64,000 bases of DNA from Perkinsus chesapeaki ATCC PRA-425 (taxonomy: Eukaryota > Protista > Perkinsozoa), in NCBI GenBank assembly GCA_013115145.1, contig JAAPAO010000003.1:124001-188000 (forward strand), read 5' to 3'. The first letter of the stretch is position 1, and every line of letters begins with the position of its first letter. The notes beneath the pieces were generated by a model. That model saw only the letters and a list, made by a program, of their open reading frames with translations, searched no databases and was not told where the DNA came from. Of the stretch, positions 13,508-64,000 are shown piece after piece. Made by a program: the position numbers and the translations under genes.

Positions 13508-14971
13508 ATGCGTTCGTTCTCCGACTATGACGATGGCTACTACCACGAAGGTGGCTCGAGTAGCCACAACCGGCAGCACTATGGTCAGCATGACGATCGG
13601 GTTGCATATGATGGAGGTGCCCAGTATGGCCGAAGCTTTTATGAGGACTCGGCGTGGGATGAAGGACGGTAGGAATTTATTGCCAAAAAAATAGCAGCTC
13701 CTTGTTTCGATCAAGGGACCTTTGGGTTATGAGCCCAACACGCTATCCACTGCGCCAAGCTGCTGATGATTTTTTACTCCTGGAGCTCTTGTCCCTTGAT
13801 CCTCACCTCCCTAAATTGTGCAGCGTCCACGCTATTATATTCTATCCTTTCCGCCCCTTGCAGGTCAACGTTTCGCCGTCGTGGATGGCACAGCAGCAGT
13901 GATGAGTTCCGTCGACCCGGGGACGAATCTGACAGCGATCTCTCTGATGGGAGAGGCAAGGAATGGAGAGAAACAGACAACCCAGAATCGATGACTGTGG
14001 GACAGATGGCTTCCCTTTATCTCATGCGAGAGGCTAAGCGGCGATATGAGCCTATAGAGGTAGGGTGTAACGTACATATTATCCTCCCTTGCATTTTGCT
14101 AAGGTGCTCTTGACCACCCGATCACAGGGCTTGCAATTCCCGACAAGCGATCCTTCTTCTCTTATTCAGCCTTACACCCCTTTGGAGTTCAACCCTCGAT
14201 CAACTCGGCGGCCTCGAAGCTGCAGCCGGAGCCCGTCGCCGTACATGCAGCGGCAGATTGACTCGATGTTTCGGGAGATTGATCGCACACTGGCAGAAAA
14301 GCGCGGGGAGACTTCCTCAGACCGCCGCAGTAGAAGTCGGTCTAGAGAGCGTGATTACGGCCCGACCGAAGCCAAGGGTAAGGGCTACCGGTGCTTCATC
14401 TCACCTCTGCCATCTCCTTACCGACACCGAATGCTCTTCCCACTGGTTGGGCGTATCAGTGCATTATGTTAATTTCGACTTGAATCTCTCCCAGCAGTTT
14501 TCCCGTTGAATAGTCACTACAATCGACGCCATCCAGCCGTTTAGTATTTTAGGCGATAAGGGAGCGCAGGACGATAGTATGCATTGCCCTGCAGAACTGG
14601 GGCACGGTCTCGAAGGCAAGCCTCTGCCGGGGTAAACCTACCCATCACTTGTATGTATTAATTATTCACTTTTCAGCACCATGGAGGAGGCACGATTTCT
14701 CGTGGCTTCAAGTCTGGGGCCCGAGCAAGTCCAGGCTCCTCGTGGACCAGCCACCGCTGACCCCTACGAGACGGTGAGGTGGCCCCGAATGTTCCGTAGT
14801 AAAGCCATCCTTCCTTAGTTTCGTCAGCGTACTGCGACCACGTGGACGACATTTCTCGCAGCTAAGCGGTATGCTCGGCAAGAGCCCGGCGGCGAGGATC
14901 GGCTGCGAGGCCGATGTAACTTGTGTGGTGAACCCGGCCATTACGCCAGGGATTGCCGAAGACGTTTGTAG
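13508..14971 (+). CDS. RS-rich protein with C-terminal CCHC zinc knuckle, CHERP/SUGP-like motifs
   Basis: Exon 1 MRSFSDYDDGYY..., intron 13669-13863, then TVGQMASL...RYEPIE (like CHERP PAGLMAPL...EYKPLD), RSRSRSRE, DPYETFRQR (like CHERP DPYENYRR) and CNLCGEPGHYARDC. Confidence 0.55.
13685..13691 (-). terminator. RNA polymerase III terminator (T7 on minus strand)
   Basis: Seven A on the plus strand directly after the 3' end of the tRNA gene. Confidence 0.8.
13692..13764 (-). tRNA. trnM(i): initiator tRNA-Met (CAT)
   Basis: AGCAGCTTGGCGCAGTGGATAGCGTGTTGGGCTCATAACCCAAAGGTCCCTTGATCGAAACAAGGAGCTGCTA: 73-nt cloverleaf, CAT anticodon, A1:T72, three G:C pairs in the anticodon stem, ATCGAAA T-loop, all eukaryotic initiator hallmarks. 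Confidence 0.97.
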
Positions 14972-47483: not shown

Positions 47484-50162
47484 ATGTCATCGACCTCCTC
47501 TCCCATCACTGCAATGGACTACATTAAGATCCAGTTAAGAAGCAGTCTGAGAGAGGATAGAGCCAATGAGGTAACCAACACTGCGGTGGTGGTGATGAAG
47601 TATTTAAGGTCACTATTAGATCTTGGCAAATGTCGATGAGGGTATCCTAGAGCAGATATCTTCCTTTTTGAGGGACGCGGAGATTGCTGAAGACAAGTAA
47701 GCTTCGTTGCATGCGCCTTACGTTAGTAGTGGAGCCCAATCGTTTGCATTTCTGCGAGCTTGTCTATAGTAATCGATTGTGCAGTAGAGCAGGGTGAAAT
47801 ATATATTGTAGTGCTACTAGTGGCAAAATAATGACGCCTCTTCCACCACCTATCGACTCAGACATGCGACCCATTGTAATTACGGCAGTGTAGCGGCCTG
47901 GTACAGCAGCACTAACAAGTTCAGATTCCAGCATACTCAGCTACAGCAGCTCTACGAGTAGTACCGCGTCGCCTCTCTCCTCTGTGGCATCAGTTGTGGT
48001 TCAGATACATCGCCATCCTCTATGGCTGGGGCATCCCTATGTTCCTGACCGAGAGGCAGGATGAGAACTTCAATTTGGTGTTGGATATCGACATCAAGCT
48101 GGGGGCGCAGATGACGTGGGAGCATTGCGCTATAGCCGAGAAGGCTATTATCGATAAAGACGGCGGGACTAGATTTTTCGAGTTTATTATGAAGAACCTC
48201 TGCCCAGTACGTACCGGGCTTCGGGGGTCATGGAAAGGCTGATTCGCGATCATCGCTCCAGTTATCGGTGGGAAGTTTCCGTCCCCACTGGCAACCCTTT
48301 TTTGACGTGACCGAACAACGAACGCGTGGGGGGAGGGCTTGGGGATAAAGTGTCACGAAGACAGTAGAAATCTCTAGCCTCCGGACACGTAATCCTCTGG
48401 GATGAAAACGCGTTCCTAATGCGGAGAAGGTACTCTGGAGCTTTTCCTAGAAAATAGGTCCCAAGAGCATGGCCAGGGAACACCAGATTTCCTTCTATGG
48501 CTCCCTGGCTGGAGTCTGGATGGGATTAGGCAATGCCGGCTCGATGCCTGTTCGATGTCACCAGGTATTCCCCGGGGAGAAGCAGAAGCATATCGATGCC
48601 GCCTTGTTCTCGGCCAGCGGATACAGCAGGGACTCGGGATCTCATAAGGTCTCATTGCATGTCGTATTCCCGAACATTATAGTGGACAGGAAGAGGGCTC
48701 CTAAAATACGTACTGATAAAGAGTCATCATCGCGGCGGTATGGCAGGTGGCATCATCATCCTCTGGTGCTAGGTACACATATCGTTCAAAGGTTGTGGTC
48801 AGCGTCTTTGGAGGACGACCAGTCTTACGACCCTTTCATAGCTCAGCTCTCTCACGAGCTGCTCAAATTCTCTCCGGAGAATCGCTTCCGGAACGTCATT
48901 GATGAAACCAGTCTTATCGGCAGGTATGTCCGTCGCTGGGTGGGGAAGCAAAGCTTAGGTTGTTAGATTTGGTAACCGTCTGTGCTTCTGCGACAAGGCA
49001 TCGAGGCCGCCGCTTGTTAAGCCCGAGGGAAGGCCGTTAAAGCCAGTGGGACTGCTTAGATACAGCAGGAATAGGCAGTCTATCAGATGGTTAAGTGTAA
49101 TAGTCGGGAGAAGGATTCGCGTCGCTGGCTCTGGCTGAGTTCTGACGTGTTTAGGGCAAGTTGACTGAAGCTGGCTGGGTGAGGATCTCATCGTGCCGAT
49201 CGATGGACGGGACTTTGCCGAAGCTCACTCCTTGGGACCCTCCGCACGCTACAGCCTCCCGAGTCACCCGAACTGGCCCGGGCGGAAGCTGCGTGGACGT
49301 GAACCCGCAGAATCAGGATGCTTTCAGAAGCAGACGCTCCCACCTGAGAGGGGAGGCTGGGACCGGTTCCACCGCCGCTGCTGGGAGGATGACCGAAAGC
49401 GCGTAGGCCTGGTGGCCAGCTTTGGTGGGAAGAAAGGAATCTTTCAGCCGTTTCGAGCTCGACGATCCCGTATCTGGGGAGCAGTTCAAAGCATGGCTCA
49501 CAGGGTTTGACGGTGGCAAATGGGATGAGCACATCGAGACCAGATCGATATCGTGGAGGCCTTCGAGCAACCAGGGCTTCATCCAGTACTACCCTGAACG
49601 CAGTAAGTGTCGTGGCAGACGAGTGAAGACGACACGTCTGGTATTAGGGGTCATCGATGTGATGGCCGTTGACGACACCTGGCTGGGCCTGCTCACGGAT
49701 TTGGTTGCCGGGTCGACTAGCAAGCTGAAAGCTCGTCGAGTGGAGACTGATGGCAGCAGTAATAATGTCAACCTCACAGTATAGGACTTATGGTCTCTAT
49801 AGATGACCTGCCAGCTGAAGCCACCGCGACTGCTAGTGCTGGAGTACAGGTGGAGGATGATGGAGATGAGGACATGTTAGAAATTAAAGAAGCTTTGGAG
49901 GACTACGCTAAGTCCTCCGATGACGAAGTAGAATAGTCTTTTGTGGAAGGCTGGGAAGATCTTCTGCAGGTCGAGTTGAAGGCAGGCGAGCTGGTGCGAG
50001 TTATGGAGGTGGATCCGTCTGGCTGGACTAAGGCACGCCACCACCAGCGTTTCGCTGTAGGATTTTCATACTTCCGCTCAGGTCCGCAAAGAGGATGGCA
50101 CGTCGGGATGGGTTTCCGCTGAATTCCTCGGCAACCCCGATCCTAACCGTATGCAGCAGTAG
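47484..50162 (+). CDS. archaeo-eukaryotic primase (NCLDV-like AEP) domain protein fused to a C-terminal SH3 domain
   Basis: MFLTERQDENFNLVLDIDIK (motif I DxD), KVSLHVVFPNIIV (motif II SxH), VIDETSL...RLCFCDK...EGRPL (motif III region). Spliced C-terminus ALEDYAKSSDDEVELKAGELVRVMEVDPSGWTKVRKEDGTSGWVSAEFL. Confidence 0.75.
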
Positions 50163-54899: not shown

Positions 54900-56029
54900 A
54901 TGCTGTCGAGATGGTTCAGTCGTAAGCCACCGAAGGCGCTGAGTCCGTACGGTAGGGCTTTCAAGCTGACAAATAGAAAGCGTGTAAGTGCTGATACCCA
55001 CATATATCGATTTGGGCTCCAAACGGACGTGAGTAGTTCAGCAGCCAGTTGTGGTAATAAGTATCTGACATCATCATCATCATCAGGAGCATGTTCTCGG
55101 CCTACCAATAGGGCAACATGTGTTGCTAGCTCCACTAGGGACAGCATTGCCTAGCAGACCGTACACGCCAATAACAATCGGTAGGCTGCTGCTGGCAGCA
55201 GGGTCTGCTGATTGGTCTGGTCTCAGACCAGGTCACGAAGGGATATGTTGAGTTCCTCATCAAGACTTATCCAACGGGCCGGCTGACTCCGTGGCTTAGC
55301 CGCCTTGAAATCGGTTGGTTACGCCAGCTGTGGGGTAGCTCAGGTTGCCTCGCTCAGGTGATGAGGCGTTCGTTAGCGGCCCTTTTGGCCCCTTCACGTA
55401 TGAGGGACGAGGGGCTGTTAAGATTCACGACGAGATCACTGGTGTGGTGTAAATCACTGCTGCGCGGAACACGGCTGTTGGGCAGGCGAAAGGCGGCAGT
55501 CCGTGGCGAAGTCTTTAACGATGTTCGCGGGCGGCACTGGCATCACTCCGTTGTACCAGCTTGTACAGGCAATCCAGGCAGATCCGGATGATAAGACGAC
55601 CATCGATTTGTGAGACTCCGCTTCAGTACGGGGGGACCGAGCGCTGCCAGGCACTTTAGTAATCGGAGCGCGGAGGATGTTCTGCTACTTGGGGAGTTGA
55701 CGGAGAGACTGAAGGCATGGGGCGATAGCTTTCGTGCTACCTTTTACGTGGATACGGTGACAAGACTGCCCTCTGCGGTGTGTAGGGTGGAGGTGTCTCA
55801 GGGCCCGGTGCCTGAAGGCATGGTGGGAGGTCAACTAACCCCGGAAGCGGTCGAAAAAATCATATCGGAGAAGCCCCCTACAGACATGGTGAGGGCTGGC
55901 GGGCTTTACCTAATAGGAGGCTCTGCGCAGGTGCTGGGCTGCGGACCACCAGGCATGATTGAGAATTGTGTGCTTCCGGCCATGGAGGCCACGGGAGCTA
56001 CCAAGGAGCAGCGAACGTTCATTTTTTGA
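54900..56029 (+). CDS. NADH-cytochrome b5 reductase
   Basis: DTHIYRFGL, RPYTP, LIKTYPTGRLT, GPFG, MFAGGTGITPLYQ, CGPPGM. Confidence 0.9.
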
Positions 56030-56098
56030 GTGGGCGTTTCCGTACCATGTGTTGCGCTGGATAGTTGGGAACGGACGAGTGGCGCCTTCAGTGATGTG

Positions 56099-57390
56099 AT
56101 GCCCAGCCTCTGGGGGCTACTCGTAGTGGTTTCCGCCGCATTGATTTCACGCACCGATGCCTTCGCACTGGGTGCTGTTGGTGGGCACTACGGGTGCCAG
56201 GACCACTGCAATTCACCCGTCTACAAGGTCATATCTGAAGCCCTGCAATCCCACGGCATAGAGCTCTGGTATATAAACGGTACCAGCGGGTGGTTGACCG
56301 GCCCTGGTCGACGTAAGATGCTGAGGCTCATCTACCTGCTGCCGTGCTTGAGAAGCCATCTTATATACCTCTCTCTGTTCGAGTACCAAGAGACCATACT
56401 GCCGCTCATCGAGGTATCCCCCCATTGGACCATACCGGAAATCTCCTTCCATCCGTTCTGGTACTGGCCTGGCGTCCTGGTTGCCCCGCACTTCCAGCTG
56501 CTCCCTTATGTCTTCCCTCTGTTCATTACCAATGCCCTCTTAGCTGTGGTAATGCTGTACTCGCTGGTCATGGTTGCCGTCCACGATTTCATATGGGTTG
56601 TCAGCCTTATTAGACTCAGAAGCCTAGGGGAGCTCATGCAGGAGGTCGACTGGACTATTCGGGAGTGCGCTGTGCGGTGCGCCATCTTCACCTTCTTGCC
56701 CGACCCACTGCAGGTACCAAACGCCTGCCTATTTTCTATCCGCCGACCTTCTGTTCCTTTTAGGATCTTCTGTTCTACCTTTCGCTAGCTTGGGACGGCC
56801 TCCTCTTGGCCGTGCAGGCTCTGATGCCTGTAGCGGTCACAGTAGGGTACTTCCTGTGGTGGAAGGGCGCCTCTGCCGACGTGCAGGAACGTTACGCAGA
56901 CTGGGGCTACCGGCTCGTGCGCCAGTGGGCGGGCATGAAACCTGGCTACCTCCCCCTAATTCATTGTGACTCTTCTAAGGCGAACGGGCGGCACCGACCG
57001 CAGGCTTCTTGGGAGACGAAATCGAGGCGTATCTTTTACAGCTTGGTACGGAGACCGCTCGCACATGTGCACGGCGGTCGGTTCCTAACTAGCGTACTCG
57101 ATGTGGAAGGATGGAACAATACAACGCTGACAGCAGGAGGCGGAGATGGGCTCGAAGAGCGGCAAACGGCAACCTCTGAGGAGGAGAGCGGGCCAGAGCC
57201 GGCCATGAAGCCCGGGCGTTGTGTCATCTGTCTCCATCGTCGAGCCGAAGTTGTGCTTGTCCCTTGTGGGCATATGATACTGTGTCGGCAGTGCTACAGT
57301 GATGCCCGAGAGGACGCTGCTGACGTCCTTGCCACTTGTCCCCTTTGCAAGACCACCGTGAGAACAGCCTGTCGGGTTTACACCACTTAG
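56099..57390 (+). CDS. signal-peptide/transmembrane protein with C-terminal RING (C3HC4_3) finger, putative E3 ligase
   Basis: Hydrophobic N-terminus and TM segments; CVICLHRRAEVVLVPCGHMILCRQC...CPLCK. Confidence 0.8.
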
Positions 57391-57527
57391 GGGTCTGGAC
57401 TACCGAGCCCACCTGCACCATCGTTACCTTGTTTGTTCTTTCCTCTGGAACTGATTTTTCTCATCACATTGAGCTGCGTTATGGCGTTCCTGGCTACCCC
57501 ACGCGAACGCAGTCTGGAGTTGTACCT

Positions 57528-59713
57528 ATGTCATCGTCACCAGTGGTGCGCAGGCCGTTCGAGGAGGACAAGAAGTTCATCAGCAAAATGGAGTCACCGA
57601 GGTGGCACATCGACAAGGGGTTCGTAGAGAACATGAACGTGCCCGTGAAATTTTATGCCAACGATAAAATCATGCCGGCAGTCATGGACGAGCTACAGTA
57701 ATGGGAAAGCGATCCCCCCGCTGAATCGAGCGCGACAATCTTAGGCGTTACTCGGTTCGCCCGGCTGGCGAGGCCGGCTTCCTGCCCGCACTGAAGCAGC
57801 TAGGAAACGTCGCCTCCCTACCAGGTAGGCCTGAGCTGTCCTCCACCGTCCTTCACTGAGCTCGCTTCAGGAATAGTCGGCAACGCTATCGGTCTGCCGG
57901 ACATTCATAGTGGCTACGGCTTTGCAGTGGGATCAGTCGCGGCGTGTAAGTTTCTGCGGCGCGGAGCGGCTGTTTGCGGGCGAATCTTGCCTCAGTCGAT
58001 GCTTCTGATCCGCGCGCGGTGGTCTCCCCAGGCGGAGTAGGATTCGATATCAACTGCGGGGTGAGGCTTCTAAGGTAGCATCATCATTACGCTTGCACGG
58101 CGAGGGTCTACTTCGGTGGGCATCAGGACGAATCTTACATTGGAGGATGTGGAGCCTGTGAAGGAACAGCTTGTCCAAGCGCTGTATGATTGCATACCTG
58201 TTGGTGTGGGCTCTGAAGGCGTTGTCCCGGTTAACCAGGATACACTTCGCGAAGCATTGGTGAGCTTACAGTTGGTACCCTCGAATTCACGGAAACATTT
58301 CAGCAATACGGTATGGACTGGTCTGTCCGGGAGGGCTACAGCTGGGTGGAGGATAAGTACCATTGTGAAGAGCAAGGCCGGTTGCTGAACGCCGATGCTT
58401 CTGAGGTGGGACAGTCTGCCTTGTGTGCCCAGGTAAGCGTTTTCTCAGGTTTCAAGACGTGCCATGATCCGGGGAGTACCGCAGCTGGGAACTCTAGGAG
58501 CCGGCAATCACTATGCTGAAGTCCAGGTAGACACTCCCTGCAGATGCCGACCTACTTCGGATTCTACTGAACAGGTCGTCGATGAAATATATGACAAGTA
58601 CGCCGCCAAGCAGCTCGGGTTGGATCACCCCGGCCAGGTCAGTCTACCAGTGTATTCCCCTTCCCGACTACCCCACATAGGTATGTCTAATGATGCACAG
58701 TGGCAGTCGAGGTCTAGGCCACCAGGTGGCAACAGACGCTCTGCAGCTGATGTGCAAGGCGGCTATGACTCGGAAGGTAGGACAGCCGTCCGGCTTATCG
58801 TCGATGCTACTTCGGTCCGCCTCAGAATCCTATTCATCTGAATGATCCCCAACTTTCCTGCGCGCCCATTAATTCTGACGAGGGCCAGCTGTATTTGAGG
58901 GCCATGGCAGCAGCTGCTAACTTCGCCTGGGTCAATCGCAGTACCATCACCTTCATGGCCAGACAGGCGTTCAGCAAGGTGCCGCCGCCCCCCTCTCCGG
59001 AACCTATTGCTGTTTTGCAGGTATTCCACCAAGATGCCGATGATCTTGACATGCATGTTGTTTACGACATTTCCCATAATACCGCCAAACTCGAAGAGCA
59101 CGTAAGAGGCATTGTGTGGCTATGCGTTCACCGTGGTGCAGTTGGTGAACGGCGAAGTTAAACAGCTGCTAGTCCATCGTAAAGGAGCAACGCGAGCTTT
59201 CCCGCCGAATCATCCCCTTGTTGCAAGCGACTACCAGGTAAGTGAGGGATACCCCTGTTGGCTACTGTACCGCCTTTGACAGAGCATCGGAGAGCCTGTA
59301 CTGATCGGAGGCTCAATGGGAACTTGCTCCTATGTTCTAGTAGGCACCCACACAGGCGAGGTAAGTGCTGCAAACGTTTGAAGAAACATCAACGCCGTTC
59401 CTCAGAAAGAGACTTTCTCGAGTACATGTCACGGTGCTGGAAGAGTCCTCAGTCGCAGTGGCAGCCGTCGTAAGCTAGACTACGACCATGTCACATCGGA
59501 GCTGGCGGACAGGGTAGGTCAGCCTCTACCGTGTCGGGTGGGACTGTGCTTTTGATTCAGGGCGTAAGCATGCGCGTAGCCTCCCCGAAGCTCATAGTGG
59601 AGGAGGCCCCGGAGTCTTACAAAGACGTCACCGCTGTGGTGAACACCTGCCATCAAGCTGGCATCTCGCGGAAGGTCGTCAAGATGCGCCCTATCGCTGT
59701 GGTTAAGGGCTGA
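57528..59713 (+). CDS. RTCB: RNA-splicing ligase RtcB, eukaryotic/archaeal (HSPC117) type
   Basis: [77 protein letters not shown]. Confidence 0.97.
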
Positions 59714-60001
59714 TTACTAAATTGTGTTGAAGAATACTTCACCGTTATAGATTACTATCTTGATTTATCATCTCACTGAGTGACTCGTTTTTTCTTGGAA
59801 GGATTTGTTCTGAGTTGCTTAGTTACAGTACCCGCCATCTAAAGAGTGTTCTGCGATCGGCAGGGCTTAGGGGCTCTTTAGATTTAGGGACTGTACCTTG
59901 TCCTGGCGCGCGGGGAGGCGCGGTCTTCAAACGCGAAAAGTTACCTGAGCGCATGCTCTGCGATGTATGGGCCGGTCAGAGCTTTGGCAGTCGGGCAAGC
60001 A

Positions 60002-61173
60002 ATGTCCTCCACGACAGGCCAGGGAGGCTTTCCTCTCTTGCTCACCGCGGGTGGCAAGTCCCTCGAACCAGTGTCGCAAGCGGCACTGTCGAAAGCAGCT
60101 CGCATGCTGGGCCAAGATGCTGTGGCGGTACCACCTGTGAAAGCTGCCAATGTGAGCTTCCCTTCCGCAACTGTATCTTATAGCGACACTTTCCTTCTCA
60201 GAAAAGGCCGACGAGGGAGAGTCTTCTCACCTTCGAAGCGCCTCTGCTCCGGCCACACGCTCCTCTGGAAGCCACTGGGGTGGCCCTGAAAAGTGACGAG
60301 ACTGAAGATACTACCTTGGGTATGATCGACCACCAGCACATAGAGATGCTTCCGAGGCCACTTTGTAAAAAGCGAAAAGCAGACTTCTTTGAGCAGCTCC
60401 AGCATGAAGAAGCCACGAAGGGCTCATCTTGCGGCGTAGATCCAGACGAGGTCACTGCCAGCGACCTGGATGCGCTAGAGGCCAGCCTTCCCTTTGGTCC
60501 CGACCAACTGCAAGAGTTCATAATCACGCGGAGGTTCCCTCTGTTGTACGTTGGTGTTGACAGCGCTGGTCTCAACGCGCCTGGGGTGTGCAGTACAGCA
60601 GCTGAGGATCTTATTGCCAACGATGGCATCGTATCGGTGAGGGTGCAGGCGAGAGCCGTAGTTGAGACGAGGGACACCGCGGGAGCACAGGCGAGGGGAG
60701 GACTCTTAGTGGTCGATCAGGACCAGCTCCCGGGATCGAGAAGGGAGTTCGGATTGCCCACAGGGCCTGAGCTGTGCTGGCGGGCCCTTGCGCCCGGCCA
60801 AAGGTTTCATCGCAGCGGTGATGCCGAGGCGCCAGTGGTCCTACCGGGAGGATGGAAATTTCCGAGTAGGCTGTTGAAGGTCGACCGAGAGTGGGTGGAC
60901 ATGCGGGGTAGGGTGGCCTCCTGTGTGCTCGGTGATGGCTTGTGGATCGGCTTCGAGAAGGGCGACAGCGTTCTTGTCTCGGGAGAGAAGGGCCAACTCA
61001 GCCGTCTACTGGAAAGGGTACAGTCCGGAGCAGTCGTGGAGGTGCGGAACTGCTGGGCTTTGCCGGATTGGCTTGTTACCAGTGGCTCACGTGAACTGAG
61101 AGGAGACAGCACCAGCGTGGAGATCCTCCGCATTACTGAGAAGTCTGCCATGTCCCCGAAGTGCCTCGCATGA
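60002..61173 (+). CDS. miniature BRCA2-like protein (one BRC repeat, degenerate helical/OB segment)
   Basis: LLTAGGKSLEPVSQAALSKAARMLG fits the BRC repeat (F.TASGK.V.VS..SL.KA..L). GPELCWRAL...SRLLKVDREWV parallels BRCA2 GKEEFYRAL...PKLISRIWV. VLGDG...LSRLLERVQSGAVVEV is OB1-like. One intron 60152-60201. Alternative start 59963. Confidence 0.55.
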
Positions 61174-61396
61174 CATTAGTGTCATTACCCCTCGGCAAGT
61201 GTTATCTTTTGTTCTAGTTCTAGCTCTACAACTGGGGTCTTTGCCTGTCCCGTCGTGGTGTGCGAAATACTGTAGGTATCTGTTGGACATTCTAGCGCGC
61301 CGTGAGCGACGCTCCTAGAAAGGGACCTCAACCTCCCTTCGGTCGTCCTTATGAGCCCCGTACGATGCTGCTCTGACAGCAGCCTTATGTGGTAGA

Positions 61397-63442
61397 ATGC
61401 TAGTGCGGCATCGCCTTCCCCTTGGCGCAGCGCGCACAACACGGTTTCCAGAGATCATTAGACCATCTGGAGGAACGCCCATCCATCTATACACCGACGA
61501 TGTGGACCAGCACACTATGCAGCAGCTGTGAGGGGCGGGGTCGCGCTATTGGCAATCTACAGCCAAGGCTCAGTGACGGACTTGTGTGGTCAGGGTCAAC
61601 CTTGCTCGGTCGCCGATGGTCGTGGGCTACGTTGCGGCCATGGCTGATGTTCACCTAGGCAAAGTTATGCAGCCGGATGGAGAACGCTCACTGTTCCATA
61701 GTTTTTTCGCAGGTGCTACGATCGGCAGTGTTTTTGCATCGCGGGATTTCGTTTGCCCCAATGCGGTGGGCGTGGACATAGGCTGTGGCATGTGCGCAGT
61801 GAAGGTAGGTCACCTCGTTTCTCGAGGTGTCTAACGTAGGGTCCGTACGGCGTGTCGCTGTCAGTGTAAAGATCCACACCATGCCAAGGGAGATGTTTCA
61901 TTGGAAAATATTCAACATTGAGGAGTGTATTTTCTGTGGTGGTTTGGGAAGGAAGGCCATCAGTCTGATAGCTCGATCGGATGATGGCACCAATTCCGAA
62001 CATTATCGCTTCGCGGCTCTTCGACCATAGTAGCCGTGGCGAGAGTGGCGGCCTTCGTAGAATTGCAGCAATAACGCTTCCGAAATAGGGTTTTGCAGTG
62101 GACGATCTATACGTAGGTTCCAGAGCTATCGAAACATGCTCTGTCGGAACGGTTCTTGACAAGGCTGCATCGTCAGTTGGTGGAGCGAATCCCGACGGGT
62201 ATATGCCAACTGAGAGACGGTTCATGGCATTGCCTACACGTTAGGCTTCAACAGCCACGAAAAAGCATCTTCTGAGATGCGAAAGGCGATGAAGCAATTG
62301 ATAGAGAAACACAACCCTACTGCGCACACTAGGCGGGTGAGCGAATAGCGTATACGATTCGAGCAGCTGACCTGTAGCCAGGTCATCGGCGATCGGCATG
62401 TGAGACAGATCGGCACTCTTGGAGGCGGCAATCATTTCATCGAGCTTCTCTACGATGAGGAGGACGGCATCTGGCTCATGCTGCATTCCGGGAGTCGAAA
62501 TATCGGCAACATTACTGCTCAGCATTACGATGAGTAAATGCGGCGACACAATTTGGTGTCCCCGACTATTAAGGGATATCTGTGAGTCGAGAGGGGTATT
62601 GGACGGTCTCAGGTTGGCAGCGAAGCAGAACGGAACGTCGAAGGAGAACCTTGCGCATCTTGCGATCGCCAGCGAGGCCGGGCAGGACTATTTGCGGGAC
62701 ATGCACTTCTGCCAGGCCTATGCGATGGAGAATCGGAGGTTCATGATGGATTCATTCGTCAGTAGCTACTATCTCCGCCGTCTTGCATCAGTCAGCGTAT
62801 TAGGCGCTGTTAGAGATCTCAGCGGGAGAGCGCCGGATTGGGACACACTCGTGAACATCCATCACAATTACTGTGAGTGTGAGGACTGTGTTTATCGGGA
62901 TCCAGAATCGGGCAAGATAATACGGGATAAGCTGTGGATCACCAGGAAAGGAGCAACTTCGGTACAAACTGGTTCACGCTGTCAAATGATCAGTCTGATT
63001 CTAGGCTCGTAAAGGCCAGCTTGGCATAATACCGGGCAGCATGGGAACCGGGAGCTACATCACTCGAGGGAAGGGCGAGAGCATGGCTTGGAGTTCATGT
63101 TCGTTTCTTCCGCCTTATCGATTCGAGCGTAATCGGTCTCGAACTGTCAACCGTGGCTTTTAGGCTCTCATGGTGCTGGCCGACGGCTGAGCCGGAACGC
63201 CGCTAAGCGGGTGGTCGGAGTTGCCGAATTGAATGAAATGATGGAAGGTATCGTTTGGGACAGCGATGCCGCTAAGTTGGTAGGATCGACTTGCCGGTAT
63301 GAGGATATTCTTATCATCGCTGCAGGTCCGTGATGAAGCACCCGTCGCCTACAAAGATCTCAAAGAAGTGATGGTGAACCAGGAGGACCTGGTCGAGGTC
63401 GTGCATAAGTTACTGCCGTTGATGAACATGAAGGGATATTAG
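61397..63442 (+). CDS. rtcB: RtcB RNA ligase, bacterial (E. coli RtcB-like) type, with N-terminal extension
   Basis: MADVHLG, GATIGSV, PNAVGVDIGCGM, IGTLGGGNHFIE, IWLMLHSGSRNIG, NIHHNY, WITRKGAT, GIIPGSMG, SHGAGRRLSR, DEAPVAYK; multi-exon. Confidence 0.93.
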
Positions 63443-63586
63443 TGTCACCGCACCGTATCGCGTACCGTTGGTTTCGAGTTTCCGTATTGCGGTGCGGTCT
63501 CACTGCTATCCGTAAACACGGTTTTTCCGACTTTCCTAGGATGTGTTGTTCAAGGGAGGGGGAGCGTTCACACCGCAGGGTTTCCC

Positions 63587-64000
63587 ATGAAGAGTGTTTT
63601 CCTCCGAGCGAGCGAGATCTCAGAGGCGGCATGTGGCCTGAGGCGTTTCCTCAATAACGATGTGAATCGACGGCACTTCCTGTCAGAAGGGGTGTCATTC
63701 AAAAAGTACCCTTGGGATTTCAAGGTTGACGAAATCCCAGACGATTCCGCCAGTGCGGCATCCGAGCACTTCATCAATTTCACTTTATGGAAGAAAGATT
63801 TGACAACTCGCGAAGCGCTCGTGGACATTTCCAAGAAGACAGGTATCAGCATGAAGGCTTGGTCCGTTGCTGGATGGAAAGATAGGAAAGCAATAACAAC
63901 TCAGAGGGTATCTATCCAAGCCGATCTGAAAGAGAAGCTTATGCAGTATCTGAGCAACGATTCAGTACGATTGTCCGACTTCACTCCTGGGAACCAGCTC
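63587..64000 (+). CDS. tRNA pseudouridine synthase TruD/Pus7 family (runs off window end)
   Basis: KKYPWDFKVDEI, FTLWKKDLTTREAL, AGWKDRKAITTQRVS (GxKDxxAxTxQ catalytic motif). Confidence 0.9.
   Translation, partial: MKSVFLRASEISEAACGLRRFLNNDVNRRHFLSEGVSFKKYPWDFKVDEIPDDSASAASEHFINFTLWKKDLTTREALVDISKKTGISMKAWSVAGWKDRKAITTQRVSIQADLKEKLMQYLSNDSVRLSDFTPGNQL

Follow-up and report, generated by a model that had tools for sequence, protein, structure and literature searches.

Genes at the locus

The stretch of DNA analysed here (the window) comprises 64,000 nucleotides (nt) of intron-rich sequence from Perkinsus chesapeaki ATCC PRA-425, a parasite of oysters and clams (assembly GCA_013115145.1, contig JAAPAO010000003.1, positions 124,001 to 188,000). 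It carries two genes for RtcB-type RNA ligases: a eukaryote-type RTCB, that is, an HSPC117-type 3'-phosphate/5'-hydroxyl RNA ligase (57528..59713), and a bacterial-type RtcB, called RtcB2 below (61397..63442; public model FOL47_005399, P0085). An orphan gene, FOL47_005398, whose public model we placed on the window at 60002..61173, lies between them, and a TruD-family pseudouridine synthase gene occupies 63587..64000 and runs on to about 64900 past the window. The public proteins of RtcB2 and the orphan agree with the window at 100%. RTCB, the orphan, RtcB2 and TruD are all on the + strand, as is the last exon of an unrelated RING-finger gene upstream (56806..57390; PF13920, E 1.5e-12; syntenic in P. 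olseni). From coding sequence to coding sequence, the gaps are 137 nt between the RING-finger gene and RTCB, 288 nt between RTCB and the orphan, 223 nt between the orphan and RtcB2, and 144 nt between RtcB2 and TruD.

A sequence-only reading of the window had reported two intact RtcB genes on the same strand, 1.7 kb apart, with TruD directly after the second one. Our results bore this description out: both genes match PF01139 and keep the ligase motifs, 1683 nt separate the two, and an open reading frame (ORF) matching PF01142 begins 144 nt past the RtcB2 stop. The same reading had missed the orphan in the 1.7 kb gap, the intronless TruD frame extending past the window, and a TT donor at RtcB2 intron 2.

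Single-exon ORFs are fragmented across both ligase genes, and + strand fragments match PF01139 at both sites. We scanned the 41.7 Mb assembly (3544 contigs) in six frames with the profile and found 10 RtcB (PF01139) matches in the P. chesapeaki genome, 10 of 10 inside these two genes. Splice modelling gave RTCB 15 exons, 14 GT-AG introns of 40-52 nt and 514 amino acids (aa), and RtcB2 11 exons, 10 introns and 417 aa. Several exons of each gene singly exceed the PF01139 gathering cut-off of 27 bits. The spliced models of both keep all of the motifs D-x-x-C, G-N-H, H-S-G-S, H-N and H-G-A-G-R, and a C-terminal E-A-P-x-x-Y-K is likewise present in both. Following work on Pyrococcus RtcB, we take the motif Asp/Cys and three His residues to be metal ligands and the His of H-G-A-G-R to be the guanylylated residue. 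Database searches for the ligase genes used single exons or public protein ids as queries, and the joined spliced translations served for pairwise BLAST, trees and the calculation of the proportions of nonsynonymous (pN) and synonymous (pS) differences.

Synonymous sites are saturated between P. chesapeaki and P. olseni (pS ~0.75), whereas pN against P. olseni is 0.028 for RTCB, 0.086 for RtcB2, 0.26 for the orphan and 0.19 for TruD. Set against the saturated pS, these values show that RTCB, the orphan, RtcB2 and TruD are real genes under purifying selection. An Rfam search at E values up to 0.1 returned no RNA family in 55000-64000, the 312-nt intron of RtcB2 included.

To place RTCB among known ligases, we used the scores of one 69-aa exon (58895-59101). 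This exon matched human-type RTCB structures with E 1e-14 to 2e-13 and archaeal (Pyrococcus) RtcB with E 1e-7, and these scores appear to set RTCB closer to the human-type enzyme than to RtcB of archaea or bacteria. The protein is in the same length class as human RTCB/HSPC117 (7P3B, 8ODO; 505-519 aa vs 514 here) and shares its catalytic motifs, and a gene for the RTCB cofactor archease is present in the genome as well, on another contig (C1511). It differs from the human gene in being split by 14 very short introns. RTCB would be an ordinary nuclear/cytoplasmic ligase for tRNA splicing and RNA repair, and would seal RNA termini bearing a 2',3'-cyclic phosphate or 3'-phosphate to 5'-OH termini via a His-GMP intermediate, in the GTP- and Mn-dependent reaction expected of the RtcB family.

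Gene order around the ligases

In our assessment, RTCB, the orphan, RtcB2 and TruD are probably neighbours that function independently in a compact same-strand run of genes; this would be ordinary gene order, lacking functional coupling, and not an RNA-repair operon. An operon is unsupported because the orphan lies between the ligases, the RING-finger gene is equally close, the TruD linkage is species-specific and RtcB2 is unlinked elsewhere. The sequence-only reading had seen here an operon-like RNA repair/modification locus that took in TruD. That proposal did not survive the finding of the orphan between the ligases and of TruD elsewhere in P. olseni and P. marinus, and the locus should not be carried forward as a eukaryotic RNA-repair operon.

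We then compared gene order between species, a check that the same reading had suggested, and the outcome was divided. TruD linkage was absent in both P. marinus and P. olseni, while the RTCB-orphan-RtcB2 order was common to P. olseni, inside a collinear block. The order RING-RTCB-orphan-RtcB2 on one strand is the same in two P. olseni assemblies, and conservation there is just as strong for the AEP-primase and FAD/NAD-binding genes upstream and for the UFD1 region downstream; 9 of 11 neighbouring gene pairs in the P. olseni region lie on the same strand. Because the whole surrounding block is collinear in P. olseni, the linkage of the RtcB pair appears unspecific. We found no RTCB or TruD near the RtcB2 orthologue in Vitrella and Effrenium, and among the 80 nearest bacterial RtcB loci, sampled as one genome per species, none had TruD within 3 kb of RtcB (0/80). 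The linkage of the pair probably arose within the perkinsid lineage and was then carried along in the collinear block.

TruD is one intronless ORF of 437 aa that starts at 63587 and ends at about 64900, beyond the window (L009:587-1900). It matches PF01142 with E 2.6e-49, scores 142 bits against TIGR00094, under the 172-bit cut-off, and has the catalytic Asp within a G-W-K-D-R-K-A-I-T-T-Q motif. Its P. marinus orthologue is 70% identical; the P. marinus and P. olseni copies are single-copy and intronless and lie on other contigs, beside GGACT genes. Between those loci and the one in P. chesapeaki, the ORF itself is the sole shared part. The site downstream of RtcB2 measures 0.8 kb in P. olseni, where TruD is absent, versus 2.2 kb in P. 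chesapeaki. Because the TruD genes of the relatives lie elsewhere and share the ORF alone, the adjacency appears to be a species-specific change of a single gene, either a relocation in the P. chesapeaki lineage or a loss at this site in the others.

The nearest relatives of TruD outside Perkinsus are bacterial TruD proteins (25-35% identity), with which it has in common the PF01142 domain, the K-D catalytic motif and the bacterial-like length of 437 aa. It differs from them in this low identity and in falling under the TIGR00094 cut-off, and it is much shorter than eukaryotic Pus7. TruD would be a divergent bacterial-like synthase of the tRNA pseudouridine-13 type. The gene lacks introns in three Perkinsus species, amid intron-dense neighbouring genes. 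On the P. olseni TruD contig (L021), further TruD fragments lie at 13998-14177 and 14781-14873. The genome contains many more TruD-family matches (C3127:8632-9837, C2782:16692-17837, C36, C619, C2849 and others), and two further TruD-family frames are long and stop-free (505 and 529 aa) and ~25% identical to TruD of this locus. The public TruD model P0201 looks wrong, as it splices out ~15 residues with the conserved C-terminal L-P-x-x-x-F-A-T-S motif.

The orphan (FOL47_005398, P0233) has two exons encoding 373 aa, with an intron at about 60152-60201. A search of 5.8 billion clusters returned four Perkinsus proteins as its only relatives, and P. olseni has a syntenic orthologue between its two RtcB genes. 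Pfam searches assigned no family to the window copy or, with E values allowed up to 10, to the P. olseni orthologue, beyond a weak BRC match; the ESM Atlas gave no lead, and a profile search of PDB sequences gave noise only. An AlphaFold2 model built from the four sequences was unusable (predicted local distance difference test score, pLDDT, 32). The orphan thus characterised appears to carry no RNA-related signature. Its N-terminus weakly resembles a BRCA2 BRC repeat (T-A-G-G-K...V-S...A-L-S-K-A), although the P. olseni orthologue alone matches PF00634, at no better than E 0.23; the orphan might act as a minimal RAD51-binding protein. Scanned in six frames, the genome yielded no BRCA2 OB1 domain.

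Some results weigh against regarding the four genes as independent neighbours. The sole two RtcB genes among ~20,000 sit two genes apart, for which the rough chance is ~2e-4; we discount this value, because a scan for adjacent family members has thousands of chances and one case per genome is unremarkable. The linkage of the RtcB pair also persists between species with saturated synonymous sites. Perkinsus mRNAs carry spliced-leader trans-splicing, and given this, the same-strand run may be transcribed polycistronically, although co-transcription of same-strand runs in general would not single this one out as a dedicated repair unit. Finally, the TT donor of intron 2 makes a normal RtcB2 protein in P. 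chesapeaki uncertain.

Some of these results would fit a functional cluster, in which RTCB, the orphan and RtcB2 are co-regulated, for example from a trans-spliced polycistronic precursor, and form a two-ligase module for RNA repair that has the orphan as a partner specific to the lineage. Such a cluster could account for the position of the genome's only RtcB genes, for an order and strand kept in P. olseni despite saturated synonymous divergence, and for the short intergenic gaps of 223-288 nt. However, the whole block is collinear between both species, unrelated genes included, and the RING-finger gene, 137 nt away, lies closer still. Vitrella and Effrenium show no linkage of RtcB2 to RTCB, the orphan lacks an RNA-related signature, and the linkage of TruD is species-specific. 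No linkage beyond general collinearity was apparent, nor did the members all appear to be functionally related, and we consider a functional cluster unlikely.

Structure and ancestry of RtcB2

Intron 2 of RtcB2 (61665..61712, + strand) was defined by alignment with P. olseni; it is 48 nt long and reads TT...AG, whereas the homologous P. olseni intron has a GT donor. No canonical GT-AG pair was found at this intron that restores the frame. Its retention would leave the frame open, introduce no stop and insert 16 aa behind H-L-G-K, and the public model P0085 does keep it. The other nine introns are canonical, and the frame has no further defect. An error in the assembly, non-canonical splicing or a real change may lie behind the TT.

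Were it a real change, RtcB2 might be decaying or altered in P. chesapeaki, either frameshifted through use of a GT one base upstream or burdened with a 16-residue insertion by H-L-G-K-G, and the two-ligase state would be nominal. The donor difference from P. olseni, the failure of any canonical pair to restore the frame and the retention of intron 2 in the public annotation all agree with this. Yet nine introns are canonical, the frame is otherwise sound and every catalytic motif is intact, pN of 0.086 against P. olseni points to long-term constraint, and a single-base assembly error or non-canonical splicing explains the TT equally well. We therefore judge decay of RtcB2 to be quite improbable.

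Several annotation features of RtcB2 were also observed. Intron 3 (61805-62116) measures 312 nt, and the other 23 introns of both ligases measure 40-79 nt. P0085 looks wrong in that exon 1 is missing and intron 2 is kept, and the P. olseni annotation P0084 looks wrong in having an unconserved 55-residue N-terminal extension. This longer P. olseni start was rejected as a probable annotation artefact, since it is not conserved in P. chesapeaki. A by-product of the analysis is a set of corrected models for three P. chesapeaki genes.

The two ligases had been assigned to different clades with no tandem duplication between them, and this assignment was upheld by exon scores, trees and the identity of the RTCB and RtcB2 proteins, which is 29%. 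This identity and the different deep clades rule out a tandem duplication. We searched the full library with the longest RtcB2 exon using phmmer and obtained 81 matches, the best of which came from P. olseni, Chromera, a green alga, a diatom and a choanoflagellate. With full-length P. olseni RtcB2 as the query, the top 120 matches were nearly all eukaryotic or eukaryote-like transcript contigs. They included the dinoflagellates Prorocentrum, Effrenium and Durusdinium at 56-57% identity, the chromerids Vitrella and Chromera, many green algae, diatoms and the ciliate Halteria. The best non-Perkinsus matches listed were dinoflagellates and chromerids (53-57% identity). The nearest prokaryotic RtcB proteins were 38-44% identical, mostly from Gamma- and Betaproteobacteria, with some from Bacteroidota, Desulfobulbia and others.

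Two RtcB2 trees were constructed, a quick one rooted with RTCB and a careful IQ-TREE run from which long branches were removed. In the IQ-TREE run, the split between eukaryotic RtcB2 and bacterial RtcB, the latter sampled from the 80 nearest loci, was supported at 100/99, which answers the phylogenetic check that the sequence-only reading had called for: RtcB2 lies in a eukaryotic clade apart from the nearest bacterial RtcB. Perkinsus and dinoflagellates grouped together at 98/95, matching the species tree, and the quick tree agreed. Because the eukaryotes form one clade with Perkinsus sister to dinoflagellates, RtcB2 appears to be old and vertically inherited and not a recent transfer. These trees point to an old eukaryotic gene of bacterial ancestry that has been vertical at least within Myzozoa, and RtcB2 may derive from one ancient bacterial acquisition common to Perkinsus, dinoflagellates, chromerids, green algae and diatoms. 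The earlier suggestion of a horizontally or organelle-derived RtcB placed beside the native one is accordingly half retained: bacterial ancestry stands, whether or not by way of an endosymbiont, but recent insertion does not, given vertical descent with dinoflagellates and chromerids and the lack of linkage to RTCB in Vitrella and Effrenium.

The best full-length NCBIfam model for RtcB2 (P0085) is NF007153, against which it scores 137 bits, with a cut-off of 407; the dinoflagellate and diatom orthologues score 159-166 bits and are also under 407. RtcB2 thus seems bacterial-type by ancestry and not an NF007153 equivalog. It shares with E. coli-type RtcB (RtcBA operon, NF007153) a short architecture of ~400 aa, and proteobacterial RtcB proteins are its closest relations among prokaryotes. 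It differs in having introns, a separate eukaryote-only clade and no RtcA/RtcR neighbour.

That RtcB2 or TruD stems from contaminating bacteria or was transferred very recently, as the bacterial-type affinity of both genes and the lack of introns in TruD might suggest, is scarcely credible: RtcB2 has ten spliceosomal-type introns and syntenic P. olseni orthologues and groups with dinoflagellates, the intronless orthologues of TruD in P. marinus and P. olseni are 70% identical to it and its best bacterial matches just ~25-35%, a near-identical bacterial donor was looked for and none was found, and introns and synteny rule out contamination.

N-terminal leaders of RtcB2 and comparison with other protists

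We measured the leader of each RtcB2 protein as the length from the start to the conserved D-V-H-L-G-K segment, minus the bacterial median. Nearly all complete eukaryotic RtcB2 proteins carried 20-215 extra N-terminal residues, which were basic and acid-poor; the two Perkinsus proteins had only 11-12. Several ochrophyte RtcB2 proteins showed a hydrophobic stretch resembling a signal peptide, followed by an A-F junction. A signal peptide with an A-F junction is typical of import into diatom plastids. Copy a of Chromera RtcB2 starts with a signal peptide, and the leaders of dinoflagellate and some diatom RtcB2 proteins resemble mitochondrial presequences. Ochrophyte RtcB2 occurs in two forms, one with a signal peptide and A-F (P0161, P0131, P0191, P0154) and one with a basic presequence without a signal peptide (P0018, P0163), which suggests separate plastid and mitochondrial paralogues.

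Organelle targeting of the RtcB2 family can reasonably be inferred from these leaders. The Perkinsus protein, with an extension of just ~12 residues, may or may not be directed to an organelle. Since most lineages carry a targeting-like N-terminal extension, RtcB2 is probably organelle-directed, and it would most likely be a stand-alone ligase for RNA end joining or repair. The leaders point to RNA ligation inside the organelles of algae and alveolates, and the RtcB2 clade bears on RNA processing and repair in organelles with fragmented transcripts.

More than one RtcB, with bacterial-derived and mitochondrial copies among them, has been described in diplonemids and trypanosomes (PMC12699882; review PMC13247085), and two RtcBs of archaeal/mammalian type are described in Entamoeba (PMC8718801). 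Diplonema papillatum, with three RTCBs, and the trypanosomes with their mitochondrial RtcB likewise combine an archaeal/eukaryote-type ligase with bacterial-derived copies, some of which are predicted or shown to be mitochondrial (PMC12699882, PMC13247085). Those papers cover no Perkinsus, dinoflagellates or chromerids and report no physical adjacency (PMC12699882, PMC13247085). Like diplonemids and trypanosomes, Perkinsus keeps a bacterial-derived RtcB besides its tRNA-splicing ligase. Our literature search returned no paper joining RtcB with Perkinsus or dinoflagellates. The genes at the locus seem to be additions to known families, and the RtcB2 clade with targeting-like leaders is apparently unstudied.

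A bolder proposal can be built on the bipartite leaders of plastid type in ochrophytes and Chromera and on the basic presequences of dinoflagellates and some diatoms. Under it, RtcB2 would stand for a family of RNA ligases, as yet undescribed but widespread among algae and myzozoans, that are sent to organelles. The Perkinsus and dinoflagellate enzymes would work inside mitochondria, with the fragmented or cleaved RNAs typical of organelles in these lineages as substrates, a role resembling that proposed for a diplonemid mitochondrial ligase, and the conserved RTCB-orphan-RtcB2 block would be co-regulated. We regard this combination as doubtful.

Further upstream, at about 47484-50162 of the window, lies an AEP-primase gene (PF23162 AEP_C962R), of which P. 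olseni has a syntenic copy (L012:1-2122). Given this shared position, the gene appears to be a conserved resident of the genus Perkinsus and not a recent viral insertion.

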